Translations under genes and position numbers: made by a program
Notes under the pieces: model-generated
What the model was told of the DNA's origin: nothing
Database searches by the model: none
The model's input: the letters and a program-made list of their open reading frames with translations, nothing else
Shown: in pieces, positions 45,852-56,014 of the stretch
Position numbering within the stretch: position 1 is the stretch's first letter
Layout: each line of letters opens with the position of its first letter
DNA from: Paramoeba atlantica
Taxonomy: Eukaryota > Protista > Discosea
Reading direction: 5' to 3'
Assembly (NCBI GenBank): GCA_977017575.1
Contig: CDRNVI010000053.1
Span: 372,001 to 436,000 of the forward strand
DNA length: 64,000 nt

Positions 45852-47348
45852 ATGCTGTTTAGGAGAAGGCTCTTGCATTCAAAAAGTTGTATCTTTGATA
45901 TCTGTCTCGTGGGAGGTGGTGTAGTTGGCGCAACTTTATTCGCTGCGCTGTCAAGATATCCAGAGTTTCGTAATCTTCGCGTTTGTATGATTGATGACGG
46001 GAACAGAGAGCGCGTTCTTTCTTTTGGTGTCGAAAATTCCGAGTATACTGAACTCCGAACTGTGGCACTTTCACCTGCTTCAGAGAATGTAATAAATAAC
46101 GTTTATGGAAAGGCTAAGAGCATCCAAGATTTAGGAAGTAGTTTTAAGGACCATGTTTCACTATTAGACACTCTGCCGATTTGTCGATATTCGCATCTTA
46201 CCGTCAGAGACACCGCAAAGAAAGTCATGACTCTCCCTGGAAAAGGTTGTGTGATCGGCATAACCGCTTTACAAAACTCCTTATTTAAGGCTATGGAAGA
46301 AATTTCCCATACACCGAACGGTTTCTCTAGCATTGGAAAGAAAATACATGACCATGAAAAAGACCAAGTTCGCGAGAAACCACCAAGCTCTCAATATCAT
46401 GATCGCGCAGTTTGGATGAACGGATGTGTAACGCGAGTTGTTCTTCCGTCCGAAACCACAGGCACAGCCACAATACAGTACCGATCGAACACCGACAGAG
46501 TGCAATGCAAAATTACACCACACAAACGTGATTTTATGAGTGAACGCGAAATTCGGGCAAAATTAGTCGTCGGATGCGATGGAATTCGTTCGCTTGTAAA
46601 AACTGCATTGGGGAATACAGTGGTAATGCTTGACTACAACCAGCGAGCGTGCGTGTTTTCTGTACTGTTGGATTCTCATGCCGCTAATGCTGAAAGAAAT
46701 TCGATATGCTATCAGAATTTTTTGCCCAACGGTTCTATTGTGGGAATGCTGCCTACTGGAAACCATTCGGCAAACATTATTTACTCCACCAATACGCTAG
46801 AAGCGCGAAAACTAGAAGCCACTGATGGAGAGGCGAAGATTATTGATGTTTTAAATGCGTCACTGTGCGATCTTGCTCCGCGCGACATTCCACGCATAAC
46901 CGGATTGCAGAAAGATCAGAGTCCGAACCCGTACCACGGACAATACAAAGTTTCCTTTCCTTTGGCAATGATGAAAGTGTCAAAGCCTTACGGACCCAAT
47001 GTCCTTTTAGTTGGTGACGCGGCACGTGCAGTGCATCCACTTGCAGGGCAGGGGCTTAATCTTGGCCTGTACGATGCCGTAGCTTTTCTCAAAGGCCTCG
47101 CCGAAACAATATTCGTAGGCGGTGATCTGAGCAAAGAGGTTGGACCCCGATACACTTCAAATATTAAGTGCTCGTCTTACGTGATGGAAGCAGCTATTGA
47201 AGCGACTCGTATTGGTCTATCTAGTAATAATTTTTGGGTAAAGCACGTGCGTTCTATCGGGATGGAGATGTTTAACCATAGTCCACTGTTACAGAGGTCT
47301 GTTGTAGCTTTGGCATCTGGAAAGCACAGCAATACTACCCTTTTTTAG
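45852..47348 (+). CDS. COQ6: Ubiquinone biosynthesis monooxygenase COQ6/UbiH
   Basis: DICLVGGGVVG, LVVGCDGIRS.VK, DYNQRA, VLLVGDAARAVHPLAGQGLNLG. ATG is 45852. Confidence 0.88.
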   Translation: MLFRRRLLHSKSCIFDICLVGGGVVGATLFAALSRYPEFRNLRVCMIDDGNRERVLSFGVENSEYTELRTVALSPASENVINNVYGKAKSIQDLGSSFKDHVSLLDTLPICRYSHLTVRDTAKKVMTLPGKGCVIGITALQNSLFKAMEEISHTPNGFSSIGKKIHDHEKDQVREKPPSSQYHDRAVWMNGCVTRVVLPSETTGTATIQYRSNTDRVQCKITPHKRDFMSEREIRAKLVVGCDGIRSLVKTALGNTVVMLDYNQRACVFSVLLDSHAANAERNSICYQNFLPNGSIVGMLPTGNHSANIIYSTNTLEARKLEATDGEAKIIDVLNASLCDLAPRDIPRITGLQKDQSPNPYHGQYKVSFPLAMMKVSKPYGPNVLLVGDAARAVHPLAGQGLNLGLYDAVAFLKGLAETIFVGGDLSKEVGPRYTSNIKCSSYVMEAAIEATRIGLSSNNFWVKHVRSIGMEMFNHSPLLQRSVVALASGKHSNTTLF

Positions 47349-48199
47349 CAAGTGTTCCTCTGATATTAGTAGTTCATCTATAGTATGGATACGGGACTGC
47401 GTTAGTCTCCTCAGACTACACATCCATCTGTACGATTGGTCCCAGCTAAACGTTTCATGGTAATTTTTTCAACTAGTTAGAGAAGTCATGCGCAATTGTC
47501 ATGTGCATCAGTGTGTATATGCACTATGCGTCCCCAGCATGTGCCGTATTGCAATGTCTCCCTACTTGAATGTTCGTCTATTTTGTACCTTTAGCCTCTT
47601 AAATAGGGGGTCAAATAAAAATCAAAATTCTTCAAAGCACACATACTAGCAACCAAAATAGTAGATATTCTGAAGTACATAGTAGGCACAGTATCCTGAC
47701 ATCATAGAGGGGGGGGGGCAACGCGTCTGTGGTGATTGGCAGAATATGGCAGAATTCGAAAGTGAACCACAAAAAAATTTCGGCGCCGCTGCGCGGCGCC
47801 TATGTTTTTCCCCCTTATGTGTTGTATTCGTAGCGTGTGGCGTATGGACAGAATTGGTGGTGGTGCTAAAGCTGCAAAATGACTCATCTGGTAAATATTT
47901 TACGTAAAAAATTCACTATCCTGAATTGGTTTCTTCTAATATTTACAAAAATCGTTTTTTTTTAGAATTTTAAATCCTTCTATTTCACCTTACAAACGTG
48001 TAGCATTGATAGAATATTACGTACTTGAGATCAAAAACCTTTTGATAATACTCGATATACCACGTTATCGATTGAAGGCACTCCTGTACTACCGTGGGCA
48101 CAATTTTGTTGCCAAAGATCAGACACTCGCTTTCACCTGCAAAGCAGCAAGCTTGAGTAGAATTTTGTACCGCAATGTTGCAAGAAAATGGAGAGAGTA

Positions 48200-49263
48200 C
48201 AGTAAACGTCACTATTCTGAGAGTCGCTAAAAATGAGAATTGGGCTGTCAACGTACAACTGGCTAAAATGAGAATGCACCTTGGAAAATGAGAATGGAGC
48301 TTCGGTCATGTGACAACGGTCAATTCAATTTTACACTCAAAGATGAGAATTGAAAAAAACGCTTTCGTTCCCTCACTGATTATTAATCAGTGATTAACTC
48401 ACTGCTTCATCTTCGCTCACTGGAGAGTATGCGAGAGATCAGTGAAAATCACTGGGGATACCGTATACTCCCCCAGTAATGGACCCCCCAGTAGCAGATA
48501 TTTCGCCATTTTTGGGCCGGCACACAGTAACAAGGATTTGTCTCGGGGGGGGGGGGGGGGGGGGTTGGAGGGGGGGTGTCTGGACGGGATGAGGGTGGTT
48601 GTGCAGTAGCGAATCGCGTGGTTTCGGGGTTGGCTGGACAGCAAATCAACGCACTCATGAACGAAAAAGGCCTTTGCCCACCCAGCAACGAAAAAGCATA
48701 CCCCACCCAGCAACAAGGATTTGGCCTTTATGGTCCAAAATCGATTCTATTACTGGGGGGGTATAGGTAGGTAGAGATAGATGGGGGTCACAGAGGATCA
48801 CTTGAGATCATTTTTATCGTTGTCCCTTCTCTTCTTCCATTCATGAAAGGCATATAAATGTCTGTGAGACCAAAAAAAGAAAAGAAAACACTGATTTAGG
48901 TGACTACGAGTAATGAAACTTTGTTTTTCTGAAAACAAAACGCTAATACACAAAAGGAAAACTGGCGCTGTTTGACTGCGCGGTGTTCTTCTGATAGAGC
49001 GGGGACTCCGCAAACCAAGGAGATAGTTGGAGATCTCTGGGGGTCGTTTTTGTGCACCCAAAGCGTCCTGTTGCTCCGCTGCTAACATTTTTCTTGCAAA
49101 ACGTTTTCTTTTTTAAAAATGAGAATTATGATTTGACCTCATAAAAAAGTGCCTGTCAACGTTCAATAGACCAATTCTGAGAATAGTGACGAAAAACGAC
49201 AAAAAAGCCGTTTTTTCTGTGTCAACGTACAACTGAGTATTCTGAGAATAGTGACGTTTACTG
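48200..49263. mobile_element. Non-autonomous TA-target element (1064 bp), pogo/Tc1-like ends
   Basis: TA|CAGTAAACGTCACTATTCT ... AGAATAGTGACGTTTACTG|TA. Subterminal repeats AAAATGAGAAT (several) and GTCAACGTACAACTG at both ends. Confidence 0.9.
48468..48761. mobile_element. Nested mini-MITE (294 bp)
   Basis: TA|CTCCCCCAGTAAT ... ATTACTGGGGGGG|TA (12/13 TIR). Internal direct repeat AG(T/C)AACAAGGATTT. Confidence 0.55.
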
Positions 49264-51695
49264 TAATGGTTTATTTTTTCAGCGTCTTGTTTTTTTCCGA
49301 CGAAGCGTGGATGGAAGCGGGGGATTGGTCACGGGGTGCATGGCAAAGCGAGCAAGACCGTATTCCCATGGACTCATCATCCTAGAAAGCTCATGATATG
49401 GGATGCCATAAATCAGCAAGGAACAATTTTACGGCACCGGTGCGATTTTTCTGCGTTTTATGCTGAAAAAGCCACCCGTTTACTATCTCCTGGAAAAAGA
49501 CGAGAACGGTTTCCAAAGGAGCTAAAGTTTGGATCCCTGTACTATCGCAGACAAGTTTTGTCCAGTATTTGGCTTCCCTACAGTAATGACCACGGAAATT
49601 CAATACTGTTAGATGACGGCGCCCCAGCTCACCGAGCAAAAAGACTCAAGACTGGTTCTCGATTATGTACGCCTCTAGAGATGAAGTTCCCTATCTATCA
49701 ATATCAAAGCCCATATGGAAGAGTTTTGCCACCGTGGCCTTCTGACTCTCCGGATCTGAATCCGATTGAGGACCTGTGGTCTAACATGAAACTTTATAGA
49801 AATACGAAATGCCCAATGACCATATCCCAAATTAAAAAAGTTTGCTAAGAGTAAATGAAATTTCCGGACACACTGGCACTTTGTTCAAAATTTCACTTGA
49901 GTTTTAAAAAGCGCTTGGAAGTATGCGTGGCAGTAAAAGGGAAAAAAAATCCGTATTGAGAGCCTTTCCAGGGCAAGTTTCTGTTCTTGACATCCATCTG
50001 TTCTTGACATATTGTGTGTTGAGCAATAAATTGTGCTTCATCTAAATGTTTGTAAAAAAACAGGTAAAAATGCACTTCTCAATAAATAAAAATGGGTAAA
50101 ATCGTCAAAGTAAGGAAAAAAAAAGTAAAAAGGAAAAATTTACTTGAAAATACTTGAAATTTTCGATTTTTCTAGTACTTTTTTCTGCATTTAGTCAGTT
50201 TATTTAAGTGCAAAAATATTCTTCCCGGCAAGTCCTGGACGAGAGCAGCACGAATATGCATTTGTTTTCCCCCAACTCACTCAGATCTTTTGTGCAGAAC
50301 CGTTCAGAAACCCTATGATCGACTCTGTAACAACTTTGGATAGATGCAGTGTATCTACAATATTACACAAGGGCAAACTTCTCTTTAAGACTTTCTTATC
50401 TTATCTTACAGTCTCCATCGGGATCAGTAGAATTGAGTCCGTGTTGGGCCCCAACAATGGCACGAAGTTTCTTTCCCGCTTCGCTAATGAATCCATCCCG
50501 CACGTGCTCGGTGCCAAGCTACCCACCACGAAAGGAGATGAGGTCGAGTATCAACTTGGCGACACCCGCTTCGCGCAACACAAGCATGAACAAACGGTGA
50601 AAGTGAAGCATTATTTCACATAAAAAATATTTTGTTTTTGTAAATTTTTTTATGTGCTCTAGCTGTTGCCTTATTATATTTTCCGTGCATTGAAAGTGTT
50701 TTTCTGACATTTTTTTGCATACAGCTGCACTTTTTCGCCGTGACGGTACGCTTGTTAGTGGGGAAGAAGCGTGAGATAATCGGCTGAAGTTCGCCTGAGA
50801 AATTGTGATACTTAAGCTAAAGAGAGGAGAACAGGAAGATTATGCTCTCCGTCGCTTATTTTAGCACCTCAAACGGTATTGCGAGAACGTAGTAATCGTT
50901 CTTGAACAAGTGCAAGATAGTTAAATTTTTCTTTTTTGCTAGAATAGGGCGATAATAATGTTTTGAAAAAAGTGTGAAATAATGCTTCACTTTGACCGAA
51001 CAAACATATTTGCTCATCATTGCAATTCATATTCATTGCAATGAATGCTGCAAATACACCATAAGCATCCTCGGACCCAATCTGGAAAAAAAACGATGCT
51101 AGCAGGGAGCATGTAAAACCCGTAAATGCGAGGCACTCCGCATCATTCGTAATGGGAAAAATGGACATTGGTGAAGAAAACTATTTATGAGGATGCAAGA
51201 ACATAAATCCAAGAGTGGAAGGTGAAGGCAACAATACAAAAGTAATAAAAAACAGGAGAAAGGGAAAGATTTTTACGCAAAACAATATGCCCACCGAAAG
51301 AAATTTCGCCGGAGGGGTCACCCCCGGGTAGGGGGGTGGAAAATGCGCGCCAAGACCCCGGCTACTGCTTCTGATGGTTTTTTTCGAAAAATATTTTTCT
51401 CAAAAGAAATTTCGTGCGTTATGCCCCCCCTAGACCCCCCCTAAACCCCCTCCCGTAGCCCCCCCCCCCCATAGATCCCCCATTTTTTTCAATTTTTGAC
51501 CACCGGAGCGCCTTTTACATTTTTTTTCTATTTGTATTACTGTGTTCCTTTTTATATTTTTTCTTCGATTATATTACTGTGTTCCTTTTTATACAGTATT
51601 TTCCCTGTTTTTGTTCACTTTTTTTCAATAATCGAGGGTAGAGCGGTAGTTATACAACCACCGCAATAAGTTGATTTACCTTTATCCACTTAAAT

Positions 51696-52130
51696 GAAGA
51701 GGAAGACAGAAGAAGAAGACATGGAGGGCTCTGCAGCGCCAACCGTTAGGGCAGAGTCTCAGGTCACCGACCTTCATTGTCTTGCTACCCCCTTCCCAGG
51801 CGGCACTCGACGCCTTGCGGCCCGAGCACGGCTACCCAACCGTAGCTACCAGGACGGGCGTCCAACCCCGTTGCATCGTGTAGGCTGTATCTCAAGCCTC
51901 CTTTGCGTAAGCAGATCGCAATTTAGCGGCTGCGCTGGAGCCTGGTTCAGCTCGGAGGTTCCGGGTCGGTCCTCCAGGGGAGCGGAGCTGGGTGTGGTCC
52001 TTGAAGGCACTCCTGATCGCTTTCCCTTTGTAGTGAGGCCGCCAGGTTGCGAGTTTTGTCGATAGTGGGAATCGAACCAACAACCTGCAGGTTGTAAGGC
52101 CACCGCCTACGAACTACGCCCGCACCGCTT
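51696..52130 (-). mobile_element. Candidate tRNA-derived SINE (435 bp)
   Basis: Minus strand: GCGGGCGTAGTTC head, A-box-like TAGTTCGTAGG (52116-52106), B box GGTTCGATTCC (52078-52068), (TCT/CTT)n tail at 51696-51720. Exact 11-bp direct repeat TCCACTTAAAT at 51685-51695 and 52131-52141. Confidence 0.75.
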
Positions 52131-52176
52131 TCCACTTAAATACAATTCCACTTAAATACAATTGCGGTGGTTGCAT

Positions 52177-52212
52177 AACTATAAAGATACAATTTCTGTA
52201 CCCTGTTGGTAC
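52177..52212 (+). ncRNA. Spliced-leader (mini-exon)-like sequence with GT donor, probably a relic rather than a working SL RNA gene
   Basis: AACTATAAAGATACAATTTCTGTACCCTGTTG|GTAC. 18/22 identity to the kinetoplastid SL core CAGTTTCTGTACTTTATTG|GTA in exact register, and it starts with AACT. No recognisable SL intron or Sm site follows. Confidence 0.55.
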
Positions 52213-53009
52213 TTTTTCCTTGGCTCATCCTTTCTTTCCCCGGCAACGGGCATAGTCTTACTGTTTTATATGCCCGTTGCCGGCCCGCACTAAGGTCGGA
52301 ACTGGCCCTCTTGTCGCTGAAGCAGGGTACGCGCCATCACCCCTTCACCACTTCCCGACTCACTCCCCTGGAGTGAGTGTGCTTCCCTCCCTCGGCTTCT
52401 CTTTCTCCCGCGCCTGCCTTTCCGTGGAGGCAATGCGTCACGGTGCCTCCCTTGAGGACTACTAGACGTGTCCTGCGCCGACGAGACTCTCGGCTCTCTG
52501 CACCTGTGGGTCGCCCAGCTCTCTGCACCTCGGCTCTGTCGCAGCTCTCCGCACCCGGATTGCCCCCGAAACTGTAATATGGGGATTACGCTCTCTGCAT
52601 ATATGGGGATCCGGCTCTCTGCACCTGCACAAGACAACCGAGCTCTCTGCACCTGGGACCCCAGCTCTCTACACCCGCACACCTCCGGCGAGGACGAAGC
52701 CTCACGTGATGCACCCGTCGTATGCGGGTAAGGATATTGTGAGAATAATCTCTGCACTACAAGTGCATGCCTAAACAAATTCGCCCCAGGCTGCACACTA
52801 CCGTTCCAGGCTGCACACTCGCCAAAGCGGAAGCCGGGAAACTCAAAAAATATGGGGAGATGGCAAGCGACAGAGGAACGGTCCTCTACCCGCTAGCCTT
52901 CACGGTCTTCGGAATCCCGGGGAACGCGACACTCTCCCTTTTGCGGAAGTATAGGAAGAATAGAAAAAGAAATGTCGATACCCTCACAGTAAGTTCGCTT
53001 TCTATATGA
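52213..53009 (+). mobile_element. Internally deleted CRE/SLACS-type non-LTR retroelement
   Basis: GC-rich 5' region with a hairpin and repeats. 52767-53009 encodes KAEAGKLKKYGEMA...YPLAFTVFGIPG, homologous to the RLE C-terminus at about 55760-55880. The 5' extent is inferred. Confidence 0.6.
52493..52760 (+). repeat. About 8 irregularly spaced copies of GCTCTCTGCACC
   Basis: Copies near 52493, 52518, 52544, 52590, 52614, 52642, 52663 and 52749, some with 1-2 mismatches. Confidence 0.85.
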
Positions 53010-53495
53010 TGTCAATTTAAACAAGCATATATTCGACATGAAATGAAAACAGTTATTAACACTGATTAGAGAAAAAAATGTATAAACGATTGTATAGGTA
53101 TGGGGCTCCATTATTCCATTGTTAAAAATAAGGAAGGCCGAATTAAAGTTTCCTCCTTTTGTAAAATTCTGTAGTGCAACTTGAGAAATTAAAATTGCTT
53201 TTTAAACTTTTGCAGACCCTGTGGTGCAATACTTGTCGGTCATATCACATTGCCTAGTGCGCTACTGAATCGTATCAGGACATTCATGTGACCAAGATTT
53301 TATGGACATTCATCGAGTTGATAATTTTTTTGGATTCCCTTTGACTAAGATTTTATAAATGCTATGTTGAACAGTATTGTTCGAAAGTTTGTTATTCAGG
53401 CTGCCCCCCCCCCTCACGTATCTCGCTAAATGATATAAACTCGCAGGATACGATTCCTTTTTATTCACATTTTTTTGAGTCTGTCAAAGGCTCGC

Positions 53496-53689
53496 AATCC
53501 AGGCTAAAGTGGACGAGGGAGATACTAAAGGCACCTTTACAAAACCACCTCGAAACTGGAACGGTATCACCCGTTAAAGATCCTTTTGTCAGTTCAGAAT
53601 GCTCTACAAACCGGAAGATACCGTTTCAATTTCGAGACGGTTTTGCAAAGGTCCCTTTAGTATCTCCCTCGTACACTTTAGCCTGGATT
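53496..53689. mobile_element. Foldback/MITE with 73-bp inverted arms and a 48-bp spacer
   Basis: Arms 53496-53568 and 53617-53689 are about 90% complementary. They contain the mariner-like end motif TACGAGGG internally. Confidence 0.8.
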
Positions 53690-53786
53690 AAATAGCCATC
53701 GGAACATGCTCCCTAGGGCTCTTTACAACTTCCCACGCGAGGAAGTCGTCGTCGCCGAGTCAAAAAGGCAGAGGGCGGAGCTTTCT

Positions 53787-54460
53787 GAGAGCTCTCGCAG
53801 ATTTGTATGTCTTTGGCGTATTAGGAACGCTCGGCTTGAAAGATTTAATCCGATGAGAAAAAACATGTTTTTTTCCTTGTGAAAATATGGCAATTTTTCA
53901 TTTTTGCCCCATTTTACGCCCGAAAAGCGAGTTCGCTCAAGGAATTCTCATGGTGTTTCGAACGCCCGTTCTTATGCTTTGCCAGGGAAGATTAAAGTAC
54001 ACTAAAGATTACTTCTTGTGGCCGACTTCGAGAAAAAACAGTCTTATTCCCGGACTTATCAAAGTGTTTGGGTCCACTAGGGAACTGTGAAACTCTGGGT
54101 GGAACGATTCATGTTTTTTACGATAAACTTCAGACAAAAGATAAAGATAAGTTTGATAATAAGTTACAAAACTTCAGAAAACGTTGTAGAATCATCGTAG
54201 AAAAGAAGGGTGCATATTGTGGATGCAACATGGGTTTCAAAATAATTTTTCCTAAAAATATCTGAGATTTTTTATTATTTCTTTAAGTGACAATTTGCTT
54301 TTTTGGCCTATTCGGTATTTGGAGTTCTAATTTGATATGTCAAAAGCTACCAGTGCAAAGACATACAACTCTGCGAGAGCTCTCGAATGCGGTATTATTT
54401 TCCGAAATTGAAAAGTTTTTGCAAATTTTAGACCCCCCCAGATGGAAGTTTTCACCCCTG
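53787..54460 (+). mobile_element. Tc1 deletion derivative (left TIR truncated), related to the 36775-38334 family
   Basis: Right end ...GATGGAAGTTTTCACCCCTG|TA. Shares GAGAGCTCTCG and TTAGACCCCCCC TIR blocks. Retains the transposase C-terminal relic RCRIIVEKKG near 54180-54210. Confidence 0.85.
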
Positions 54461-54482
54461 TATATATGTTTATATTTATATG

Positions 54483-56014
54483 GCATAACCTCTTTTATAT
54501 ATGGCACTCCGAACACGCTTATTCCGACATCTCCGACCCACCCACCGTTTAAAGCCGTTCGAGGTGTCAGACAAGGAGATCCCCTCGGCCCAATGCTGTT
54601 TTCTATAGCTATTCAGGGGATTCTTGATGGTGTGAAAGCAGATTACAGTGACCTTAAGATATGGGCCTATCTGGACGATGTTACAATCGTGGGTAACCCG
54701 GAAAGAGTAATACAGGCGTACGAAAAATTTATGGCTGGGGCCTCGCAAATAGGTCTGGAAAACAACGAATCGAAGTGCAAGCTCTCGACTCACTGCGCGG
54801 AGCAATACCTTCTATTCAAAGGCAAGAAAATCCGGCAGGAAGACAAAGGTCAAAAGTTGCTTGGTGCATTTGTTTCAAATGAGAGAAAGGTAAAATCGGG
54901 TTGAGTACTTCAGCAGCTTCCGAAGCTACGCTCGTTCTTGGAACGCCTACAGCAACTTTCACTACAAAGCGCTTATACATTGTTGAAGCTATGTGGAATT
55001 CCAAAGTGGATCTATCTCCTGCGATGTCATGAGCCGGATGTTACGGCGGCTGCAAATAAGCTTGCCGATGAGGCTGTCGAGAGATGTGTTACTGAACTGC
55101 TGGGAGGCTTTGGAAACCTAGAGGGGAACCCGTTTCACAATTACCATATGACGGCGAACCTCCTGGGAGCACAGCCTTATTCCACGCAGGCTGAAACTCT
55201 CTACTCGAGGGCTAAAACCTTTTCGTATGGAAGATCCTATTTGGAGAAGCACCTCAGCAGGGGTCCGGAAGTAGAAAAAGAGAGCACTCCTACTAACCAA
55301 GTACATGCACTACAACTCATGGATAAGAGGACTGGCTACTGGATGGAAGCATGGAGAAATCGAGGCGAGTACTACCTACGAAACTCGGAATGGCAAACAG
55401 CGGCGCGGATGCGCTATATGATTGCCCCCGTTTCGAGCCCTATAGTGCAATACGTATGCGGGGAAACGTTAGCAAATGCACAGTTCGTTGTTCATCCACT
55501 AGGCTGTCACAAAGTCAAAGGGGCCACCGCTGCCACTCGTCACAAGATGGTGAAGGAGGTCTTCACTCGAATATTAAAGAAATATGGGTTCTGCCCTGAC
55601 TTACATGAGCCCCGATACTCTGACGGAAAGGGTCCGGACGTTTGTTTCGCGATGGGCAGTAAGCTATGCGTTGTAGACGTCACAATCTGCAATCCGCTGG
55701 CTCCCTCCTACGTGGAAGCGGAACTAAAAACTCCCGGAAAAACACTTGAAAGCACGGAGGCAAAAACAGGGAAAGTGCACGGGGACATGGCGGCGAGCCG
55801 AAATGTAAGCTTTTTCCCTTTGGCCTTCACGGTGTTCGGAGTCGCGGGGAAAGAGACAATGCTGTTTCTTAAAAGACTTGCCCGCACAACGTCAGACCGG
55901 TACGGTTTCGTGAGGCACGTGGTGATGGCGATAGGAATCGCCATTCAAAAGGGCAATTCCGCCATTCTTACGTCGGCTGTCCAGCATTGGAGGGCAGCCG
56001 GCATTAGGACTTAA
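54483..56014 (+). pseudogene. CRE-clade non-LTR retrotransposon RT plus restriction-like endonuclease (5'-truncated)
   Basis: GVRQGDPLGPMLF, WAYLDDV, then after one in-frame TGA (54902-54904) YVCG...HPLGC, RHKMV, HEP, GPDV, VDVT, PLAFTVFG. Both ORF-track pieces are in the same frame. Confidence 0.9.

Follow-up and report, generated by a model that had tools for sequence, protein, structure and literature searches.

We analysed a 64,000-nucleotide stretch of DNA, hereafter the window, from the assembly GCA_977017575.1, which is deposited under the name Paramoeba atlantica. The window covers positions 372,001 to 436,000 of contig CDRNVI010000053.1 (C53:372001-436000 in our numbering). All 22 of its open reading frames (ORFs) of at least 250 amino acids lie on the plus strand, and they include a kinesin, a TruD pseudouridine synthase, a transaldolase, and an FAD monooxygenase. 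Antisense to these ORFs, within a gene-free stretch (47348-54938), lies an insert of 433 nt on the minus strand (52128-51696). We find that this insert is very probably an old, and probably inactive, copy of a tRNA-derived short interspersed element (SINE) of ~415 nt plus tail. The element is short and non-coding, and its family consensus has a GC content of 62%, compared with ~43% for the window. The window copy is slightly decayed, with 96.3% identity to the consensus.

The insert is bracketed by two exact copies of ATTTAAGTGGA. Read down the minus strand from 52162, the locus comprises two copies of ATTGTATTTAAGTGGA, the dinucleotide AA, GCGGTGCGGGCGTAGTTCGTAGGCGGTGGCCTTACAACCTGCAGGTTGTTGGTTCGATTCCCACTATCGACA, ~340 nt of GC-rich sequence, TCTTCTTCTTCTGTCTTCCTCTTC, and ATTTAAGTGGA (Table 1). 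On the plus strand the bracketing 11-mer reads TCCACTTAAAT; it has a third exact copy at 52147-52157, so that the window holds three matches where 0.06 would be expected by chance. The first base of the element (52128, GCGGTG...) was fixed by comparison with the rest of the family, and its 3' end falls inside the tail.

Much of this layout had been described in an earlier annotation made from the letters of the window alone (the original prediction). The head strings that it named (GCGGGCG-TA-GTTC, a CTTACAA loop, AGGTT, and GTTGG-TTCGATT-CCCAC) are all present on the minus strand, as are the perfect B box, the GC-rich body of ~340 nt followed by a repeat tail, and the exact 11-bp direct repeat around the element. 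Its leader of 7 nt is likewise there, but consists of 5 nt of the element itself and 2 nt of filler (AA). The proposed T arm (GTTGG/CCCAC) is also present, with one mismatch in its stem.

Table 1. Parts of the insert and of its junctions, in window coordinates.
Feature	Position	Strand	Basis
Upstream copy of the 11-bp target-site duplication ATTTAAGTGGA	52131..52141	-	Exact 11-mer
Filler AA between upstream duplication and element base 1	52130-52129	-	
Remainder of the 16-bp tandem repeat (ATTGTATTTAAGTGGA x2), adjoining the 5' junction	52142..52162	-	Period 16
tRNA-like head, 72 nt in the window copy, 73 nt in the consensus	52057..52128	-	
A-box-like segment, element bases 8-19	52110..52121	-	Compared with textbook A-box consensus
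B box GGTTCGATTCC, perfect match	52068..52078	-	
GC-rich non-coding body	51747..52056	-	
3'-terminal hairpin directly before the tail	51721..51746	-	Inverted repeat I2
Degenerate (TTC)n tail TCTTCTTCTTCTGTCTTCCTCTTC	51696..51719	-	Tandem Repeats Finder GAA/TTC run
Downstream copy of the 11-bp target-site duplication ATTTAAGTGGA	51685..51695	-	

The insert belongs to a large family. A search of the window's own assembly (45.7 Mb, 248 contigs) with a 457-nt stretch of the window returned 213 candidates. The 40 candidates that were scored share 93-100% identity, and most align from query base 13-14 to base 431-447. Patterns allowed few mismatches matched at 111 places for a 22-mer of the head, 152 for a 25-mer of the mid-body, and 113 for a 23-mer before the tail, while the reversed control patterns had 0 matches each. 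We estimate the family at about 110-210 copies in this genome. The sequence is therefore not single-copy, as had been considered a possible outcome, but has more than 100 copies. Identity to the consensus spans 87% to 98.6%, with most copies near 98%.

We show that these copies carry the marks of independent insertion. At ~30 sampled loci the flanks differ, and the element stands between direct repeats of 7-14 bp, of which the downstream one immediately follows its tail. The target-site duplications of independent copies are different from one another (TATTAATATCATCG, TTCCGGTTCTGAG, TATTGCATTATC, TCTGAATTCAG, CATATCCAGGG, TCACTTTTGA, TTCAAACCC, TTCAGAACA, and others). They mostly start with T, TC, or TTC, which is expected if the 3' end of a nicked target pairs with a (UUC)n RNA tail. 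Some copies are shortened from the 5' end, beginning at consensus positions 159, 164, 230, 319, 335, 343, 379, and 389, and each has flanks of its own. This points to target-primed reverse transcription of the type used by long interspersed elements (LINEs). Furthermore, one LINE copy (locus L081, contig C30) is uninterrupted and reads ...AACAATCTACCGAATGGGGGTATCC... at the place where another copy of the same LINE (L076, C60) carries the SINE within its reading frame, with TCTACCGAATG on both sides (an 11-bp duplication) and three filler bases.

The original prediction had proposed the general SINE blueprint of tRNA head, body, simple-repeat tail, and target-site duplication; the family, with its varied duplications and truncated copies, supports it. 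Many copies sharing a 5' end and a tail, each with a different duplication, had been anticipated and were found, with separate duplications for each independent copy sampled. An empty-site ortholog had also been named as support. The empty site of L076 exists, but it is a paralogue in another copy of the host LINE, not an ortholog. For the window copy no empty site was found, because both of its flanks are high-copy repeats and the sole locus that shares both of them, on C15, also carries the SINE.

The SINE has spread to more than 100 places, and many of its copies were later multiplied within tandem arrays. Copies stand in regular arrays on C40 (at 960-1000 kb), C61 (period 3740 bp), C71 (period 3420 bp), and C10 (period ~3966 bp), and also on C12, C87, and C88. 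Two contig pairs, C2/C12 and C53/C15, share reverse-transcriptase ORFs, the KMP-11 gene, and a SINE insertion, with flanks that are 93-97% identical. These pairs may be haplotigs or large duplications, which would inflate the copy counts.

Several individual copies have unusual structures. The SINE at L024 (C65:13591-14022) shares its upstream flank with one insertion and its downstream flank with a second that lies 7.2 kb from the first on C11 (L015 and L016), and it looks like the product of recombination between two SINE copies. A 5'-shortened copy at L064:2930-2960 (C14) opens with a snap-back of 15 nt, in which the neighbouring SINE sequence is repeated in inverted form, inside an 11-bp target-site duplication. 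On C30, a SINE truncated at consensus position 230 has on its two sides an inverted duplication, at least 70 nt in length, of a LINE reading frame; this arrangement is present at two places 23 kb apart (L067:2830-3200 and L081:4770-5140).

The head of the element resembles a tRNA. Its 73-nt consensus reads GCGGTGC GG GCGT AGTTGGTA GACG G TGGGC CTTACAA CCTGC AGGTT GTTGG TTCGATT CCCGC TATCGAC A. We take seventeen positions as universal among tRNAs (U8, A14, R15, G18, G19, A21, U33, R37, Y48, G53, T54, T55, C56, R57, A58, Y60, and C61). When tRNA position 1 is placed on element base 1, without gaps, the consensus agrees with 16 of these 17, failing only at U8. Other offsets of the head reach at most 8 of 17, and the maximum among 127,850 frames of the window is 14. 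In local alignments the head scores 33 against 24 host tRNAs, compared with 17.4 +/- 2.2 for shuffled heads (~7 standard deviations). Its best partners are the tRNAs Asn-GTT, Thr-CGT, and Gly-CCC, and the matching lies mostly at generic tRNA positions. Where a tRNA would have its anticodon, the head reads UAC (Val).

Within the head, conservation is strongest in those parts that RNA polymerase III (Pol III) would need for transcription. The textbook A-box consensus is TRGCNNAGTGG, and the family's A box, GGGCGTAGTTGG, fits it at all positions but T8. In the window copy this segment has become GGGCGTAGTTCG (TTGG to TTCG), which breaks G18. The B box is perfect, with GGTTCGANTCC kept, in 25 of 26 distinct sampled copies, and TAGTTGGTAGA is intact in 18 of the 26. 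The two boxes are spaced as in a tRNA, and together they form a putative internal Pol III promoter. The family displays retroposition of the LINE type, with a fixed 5' end at tRNA position 1 and conservation of the promoter boxes.

Downstream of the head, the body has no match to any Rfam family at E values up to 10, and the element as a whole has no match to a protein family or an RNA family. The longest stop-free stretch of the consensus is 113 codons, in GC-rich sequence, and there is no further sign of coding. A structured body was considered and set aside, since its fold is no more stable than those of shuffled sequences (z = -0.70). The consensus does have a short hairpin directly before the tail, ACGGTTGGC-GCTGCAGA-GCCCTCCGT, with a 9-bp stem that includes 2 internal mismatches; the window copy has one G-to-A change in the 3' arm. 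The tail itself varies from ~3 to 75 TTC units across copies. No TTTT run occurs in the element, and a Pol III transcript could thus read through its whole length. LINE reverse transcriptases with specificity for a particular 3' end, as in UnaL2 and UnaSINE1, use this kind of layout, a hairpin followed by a repeat. By analogy, the hairpin and (TTC)n of the present SINE may be recognised by a reverse transcriptase of the LINE type.

Taken from sequence, this evidence supports a putative tRNA-headed SINE that would be mobilised by a LINE. A number of results weigh against that reading. In the ungapped register, pairing has decayed in all stems (acceptor 2/7, D 1/4, anticodon 2/5, T 4/5). The Rfam tRNA model finds the head of one copy (L006) with 22.3 bits, below its threshold of 29 bits (E = 0.033, for 481 nt against all families), and its parse deletes the D arm and uses a different acceptor pairing, GUUGGUA with UAUCGAC. 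ARAGORN predicts no tRNA, whether in the window, in the individual copies, or in the consensus. Neither two acceptor-restoring patterns nor the 24 sampled host tRNAs yielded a parent tRNA gene. Many of the copies belong to tandem arrays or duplicate contigs, so that independent insertions are fewer than the counts given above, perhaps 60-100. Finally, ~360 kb of genome sequence that was read contains no LINE with the SINE's 3' end or a (TTC)n tail.

Rfam also gives no match in the window at gathering thresholds. The original prediction had itself held that the acceptor does not pair and that the head is no real tRNA. The negative ARAGORN result and the decayed stems agree with this, although the acceptor had been placed in a register that was off by 5 nt. 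In our reading, the head probably derives from a tRNA and would retain what Pol III needs of it, while no longer folding as a tRNA.

A different origin of the RNA is conceivable for the same retroposon. Kinetoplastid genomes, to which we assign this one below, are transcribed almost throughout, and the RNA could be cut from read-through transcripts of RNA polymerase II (Pol II), with the head serving as a processing signal of the RNase P type that sets the 5' end. The textbook picture of near-complete transcription fits this proposal, as does the 5' end of the element, which lies exactly at tRNA position 1, the RNase P cut site. The Infernal parse also has a 7-bp acceptor-like helix (GUUGGUA/UAUCGAC). 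However, with only 2 of 7 acceptor pairs in the register of the 5' end the head would be a poor RNase P substrate, and with the alternative helix the cut would fall within the element, 14 nt from its start. Conservation in the head is highest at the A and B boxes, which fits selection for a promoter. We consider processing from Pol II transcripts unlikely.

The tRNA-headed reading calls for a partner LINE, presumably one with a (TTC)n 3' end, and the genome is very rich in LINEs, with 1851 reverse-transcriptase candidates. We compared the places that match the tail pattern with the top 150 of these 1851 matches by contig, strand, and distance. One close pair emerged (C30:602243/C30:605507), and it was rejected as a partner LINE since it is a truncated SINE inside an inverted LINE. 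Twenty places that have the tail pattern without the head pattern were examined as LINE ends, and every one proved to be a SINE copy, either full-length or 5'-truncated. Next to a foldback element lies a diverged tail fragment of 63 nt, which was also discarded, since it proved to be an old, truncated SINE without a separate family. The ~360 kb contains no other element with a (TTC)n tail, and the single LINE 3' end that was read carries (TAGGA)n, not (TTC)n.

The (TAGGA)n LINE family (L081:4050-4075 and L009:2189-2214) has an ORF of 1211 amino acids, with its reverse-transcriptase match at C30:602243, and SINE copies often lie inside or beside its copies. A foldback element of ~520 bp, with inverted arms of ~155 bp (L030:351-875, C65), lies within 1.5 kb of many SINE copies. 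It is also found near SINEs at L007, L009, L015, L020, L021, L026, L027, L062, L063, L067, L072, and L073; at L007 the SINE is inserted inside the foldback.

The abundance of LINEs also raises the question of whether the element is itself a deletion derivative of an autonomous LINE, as RIME, NARTc, and SIDER are of ingi/L1Tc, with its likeness to a tRNA arising by chance or convergence. The short retroposons described in trypanosomatids are all LINE deletion derivatives (PMC12278014, PMC2323293), the genome holds the 1851 candidates mentioned above, and the copy at L009 reiterates its own 5' end in 18-bp units. Yet agreement at 16 of the 17 universal positions within a single register far exceeds what chance would give, the best frame in the window reaching 14. 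Apart from the family's own copies, the SINE has no similarity to the LINE sequences read. There is also no ribozyme or Pr77-like match in Rfam: no HDV-like ribozyme family, as expected for an ingi/L1Tc-type signature, is found at E values up to 10, and the tail is (TTC)n, not poly(A). A LINE-derived origin is thus very improbable.

The 5' junctions of the SINE are untidy. Tandem Repeats Finder reports a repeat of period 16 at 52130-52163 (2.1 copies, 100% match), of which the upstream 11-mer is a part, and the duplicate copy on C15 carries the same 16-bp duplication. Many copies elsewhere hold extra bases between the duplication and element base 1, e.g., CCC, GT, CC, or AA, and three (L007, L008, and L077) have 9-13 nt that partly repeat the target. 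The copy at L009 (C86; 1427-1515 and 1910-2135) starts with five tandem units of 18 bp, each consisting of its own first 15 nt and GGG. Its tail is (TTC)75, and it shows no clear target-site duplication. We infer that the extra ATTGTATTTAAGTGGA at the window copy is target sequence that was re-copied during insertion. The reiteration at L009 and the repeat in the window may both be products of the same untidy step of 5'-end joining.

The original prediction had warned that the 11-mer might prove to be part of the local 16-bp tandem repeat instead of an insertion scar. It does literally lie in that repeat. This leaves the SINE reading standing, because the evidence from the family is independent of the locus and other copies also re-copy sequence at the 5' junction. 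That the segment is immobile and spread by segmental or tandem duplication only, as the place of the 11-mer in the tandem repeat, the C15 copy with both flanks shared, and the many array copies might suggest, has next to no probability, being refuted for the family as a whole by at least 20 copies with unrelated flanks and their own duplications, by truncated copies, and by a precise empty site.

For the tRNA-headed, LINE-mobilised SINE we propose the following mechanism. The A and B boxes inside the head would direct transcription of master copies, presumably by Pol III, giving an RNA that should end in the short hairpin and then (UUC)n. The reverse transcriptase of a resident LINE might take up this hairpin/(UUC)n 3' end and prime on a nicked target whose 3' end is paired with the UUC repeat, so that the RNA would be copied into the genome. 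Such an insertion would yield a target-site duplication of 7-14 bp. The 5' junction would often hold additional or re-copied bases, and some copies would be shortened from the 5' end.

The genome is that of a kinetoplastid, as judged from the kinetoplastid marker family KMP-11, which it contains with 151 bits, from co-directional, intronless ORFs, and from a spliced-leader-like sequence next to the insert. The flanks of the insert are themselves repetitive. Upstream (to ~52181) lies a repeat family with 220 candidates, which opens with the spliced-leader-like sequence, and downstream (~51547-51671) lies a 125-bp repeat family with >1000 candidates. A shared string of 21 nt, ATTGCGGTGGTTG[C/T]ATAACTA, opens both families, on the plus strand in one case (52161-52181) and on the minus strand in the other (51649-51669). 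On the plus strand this string leads into the spliced-leader-like AACTATAAAGATACAATTTCTGTACCCTGTTG|GTAC.

Some contigs of the assembly may differ from the others. Across loci L031-L060, which lie on contigs C137-C185, we observed clusters of tRNA genes (Lys-TTT, Ile-AAT, Ser-AGA, Ser-CGA, Asp-GTC, and Thr-TGT) that recur many times on the same strand on C143, C144, C149, and C177. Reverse-transcriptase matches on the contigs with these clusters are short (~480 nt). Among the matches listed, no SINE lies above contig C109 except one 61-nt tail fragment on C185. The short reverse-transcriptase matches suggest that the assembly includes sequence of another kind, or from another organism.

Short retroposons are well documented in relatives of this host. 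A 2025 survey of 57 trypanosomatid genomes describes four retrotransposon clades, with RIME, NARTc, and SIDER as short forms derived from LINEs (PMC12278014), and SIDER is defined by the 79-bp signature of ingi (PMC2323293). The original prediction had called these ingi/L1Tc derivatives that are not tRNA-derived. The window SINE resembles them in being short, non-coding, and dispersed, in having duplications of ~12 bp, and in its presumed use of LINE machinery (PMC2323293, PMC12278014). They differ as deletion derivatives of ingi/L1Tc that have a 5' Pr77 or 79-bp signature and poly(A) tails, whereas the present element starts with a tRNA-like head, ends in (TTC)n, and resembles none of the LINE sequences read. 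SIRE of Trypanosoma cruzi is likewise a short interspersed repetitive element of a kinetoplastid, and it is similar in length (~430 bp). In contrast to the present element, SIRE consists of both ends of VIPER, a tyrosine-recombinase retroelement (PMC6681497), is not tRNA-like, and lacks a simple-repeat tail.

The closest likenesses are with tRNA-derived SINEs that have a LINE-type 3' end, among them eel UnaSINE1 with UnaL2, salmonid SmaI, and the tortoise Pol III/SINE with CR1 (Ohshima et al. 1996, as cited in PMC2323293). Like the present family, these have a head that resembles a tRNA and bears A and B boxes, a body of unrelated sequence, and a terminal hairpin with a short-repeat tail, and they share variable target-site duplications, 5'-shortened copies, and copy numbers in the hundreds. 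What differs here is the kinetoplastid host, the TTC tail unit, and the complete decay of the tRNA stems.

The open-access literature yielded no description of a tRNA-derived SINE in trypanosomes, kinetoplastids, or Bodo saltans. The kind of element is ordinary among eukaryotes; what is new, as far as we found, is its host group. We put forward, tentatively and with somewhat more doubt than confidence, that this may be a Pol III-type (tRNA-derived) SINE lineage, the first to be described for Kinetoplastea, and that it would be mobilised by a resident LINE machinery that also reiterates the first ~18 nt of its template at the 5' junction. The reiteration is seen in one SINE copy (L009), and in the window copy as re-copied target sequence.

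The short retroposons described in trypanosomatids all come from LINEs or VIPER, and a young, tRNA-headed SINE would extend the SINE-LINE partnership to these organisms. If true, the element would be a compact natural reporter for 5'-end joining by LINEs and for Pol III-driven retroposition amid a polycistronic Pol II genome. The family offers markers for the comparison of strains and populations, and a way into Pol III promoters and LINE reverse transcription in kinetoplastid protists.

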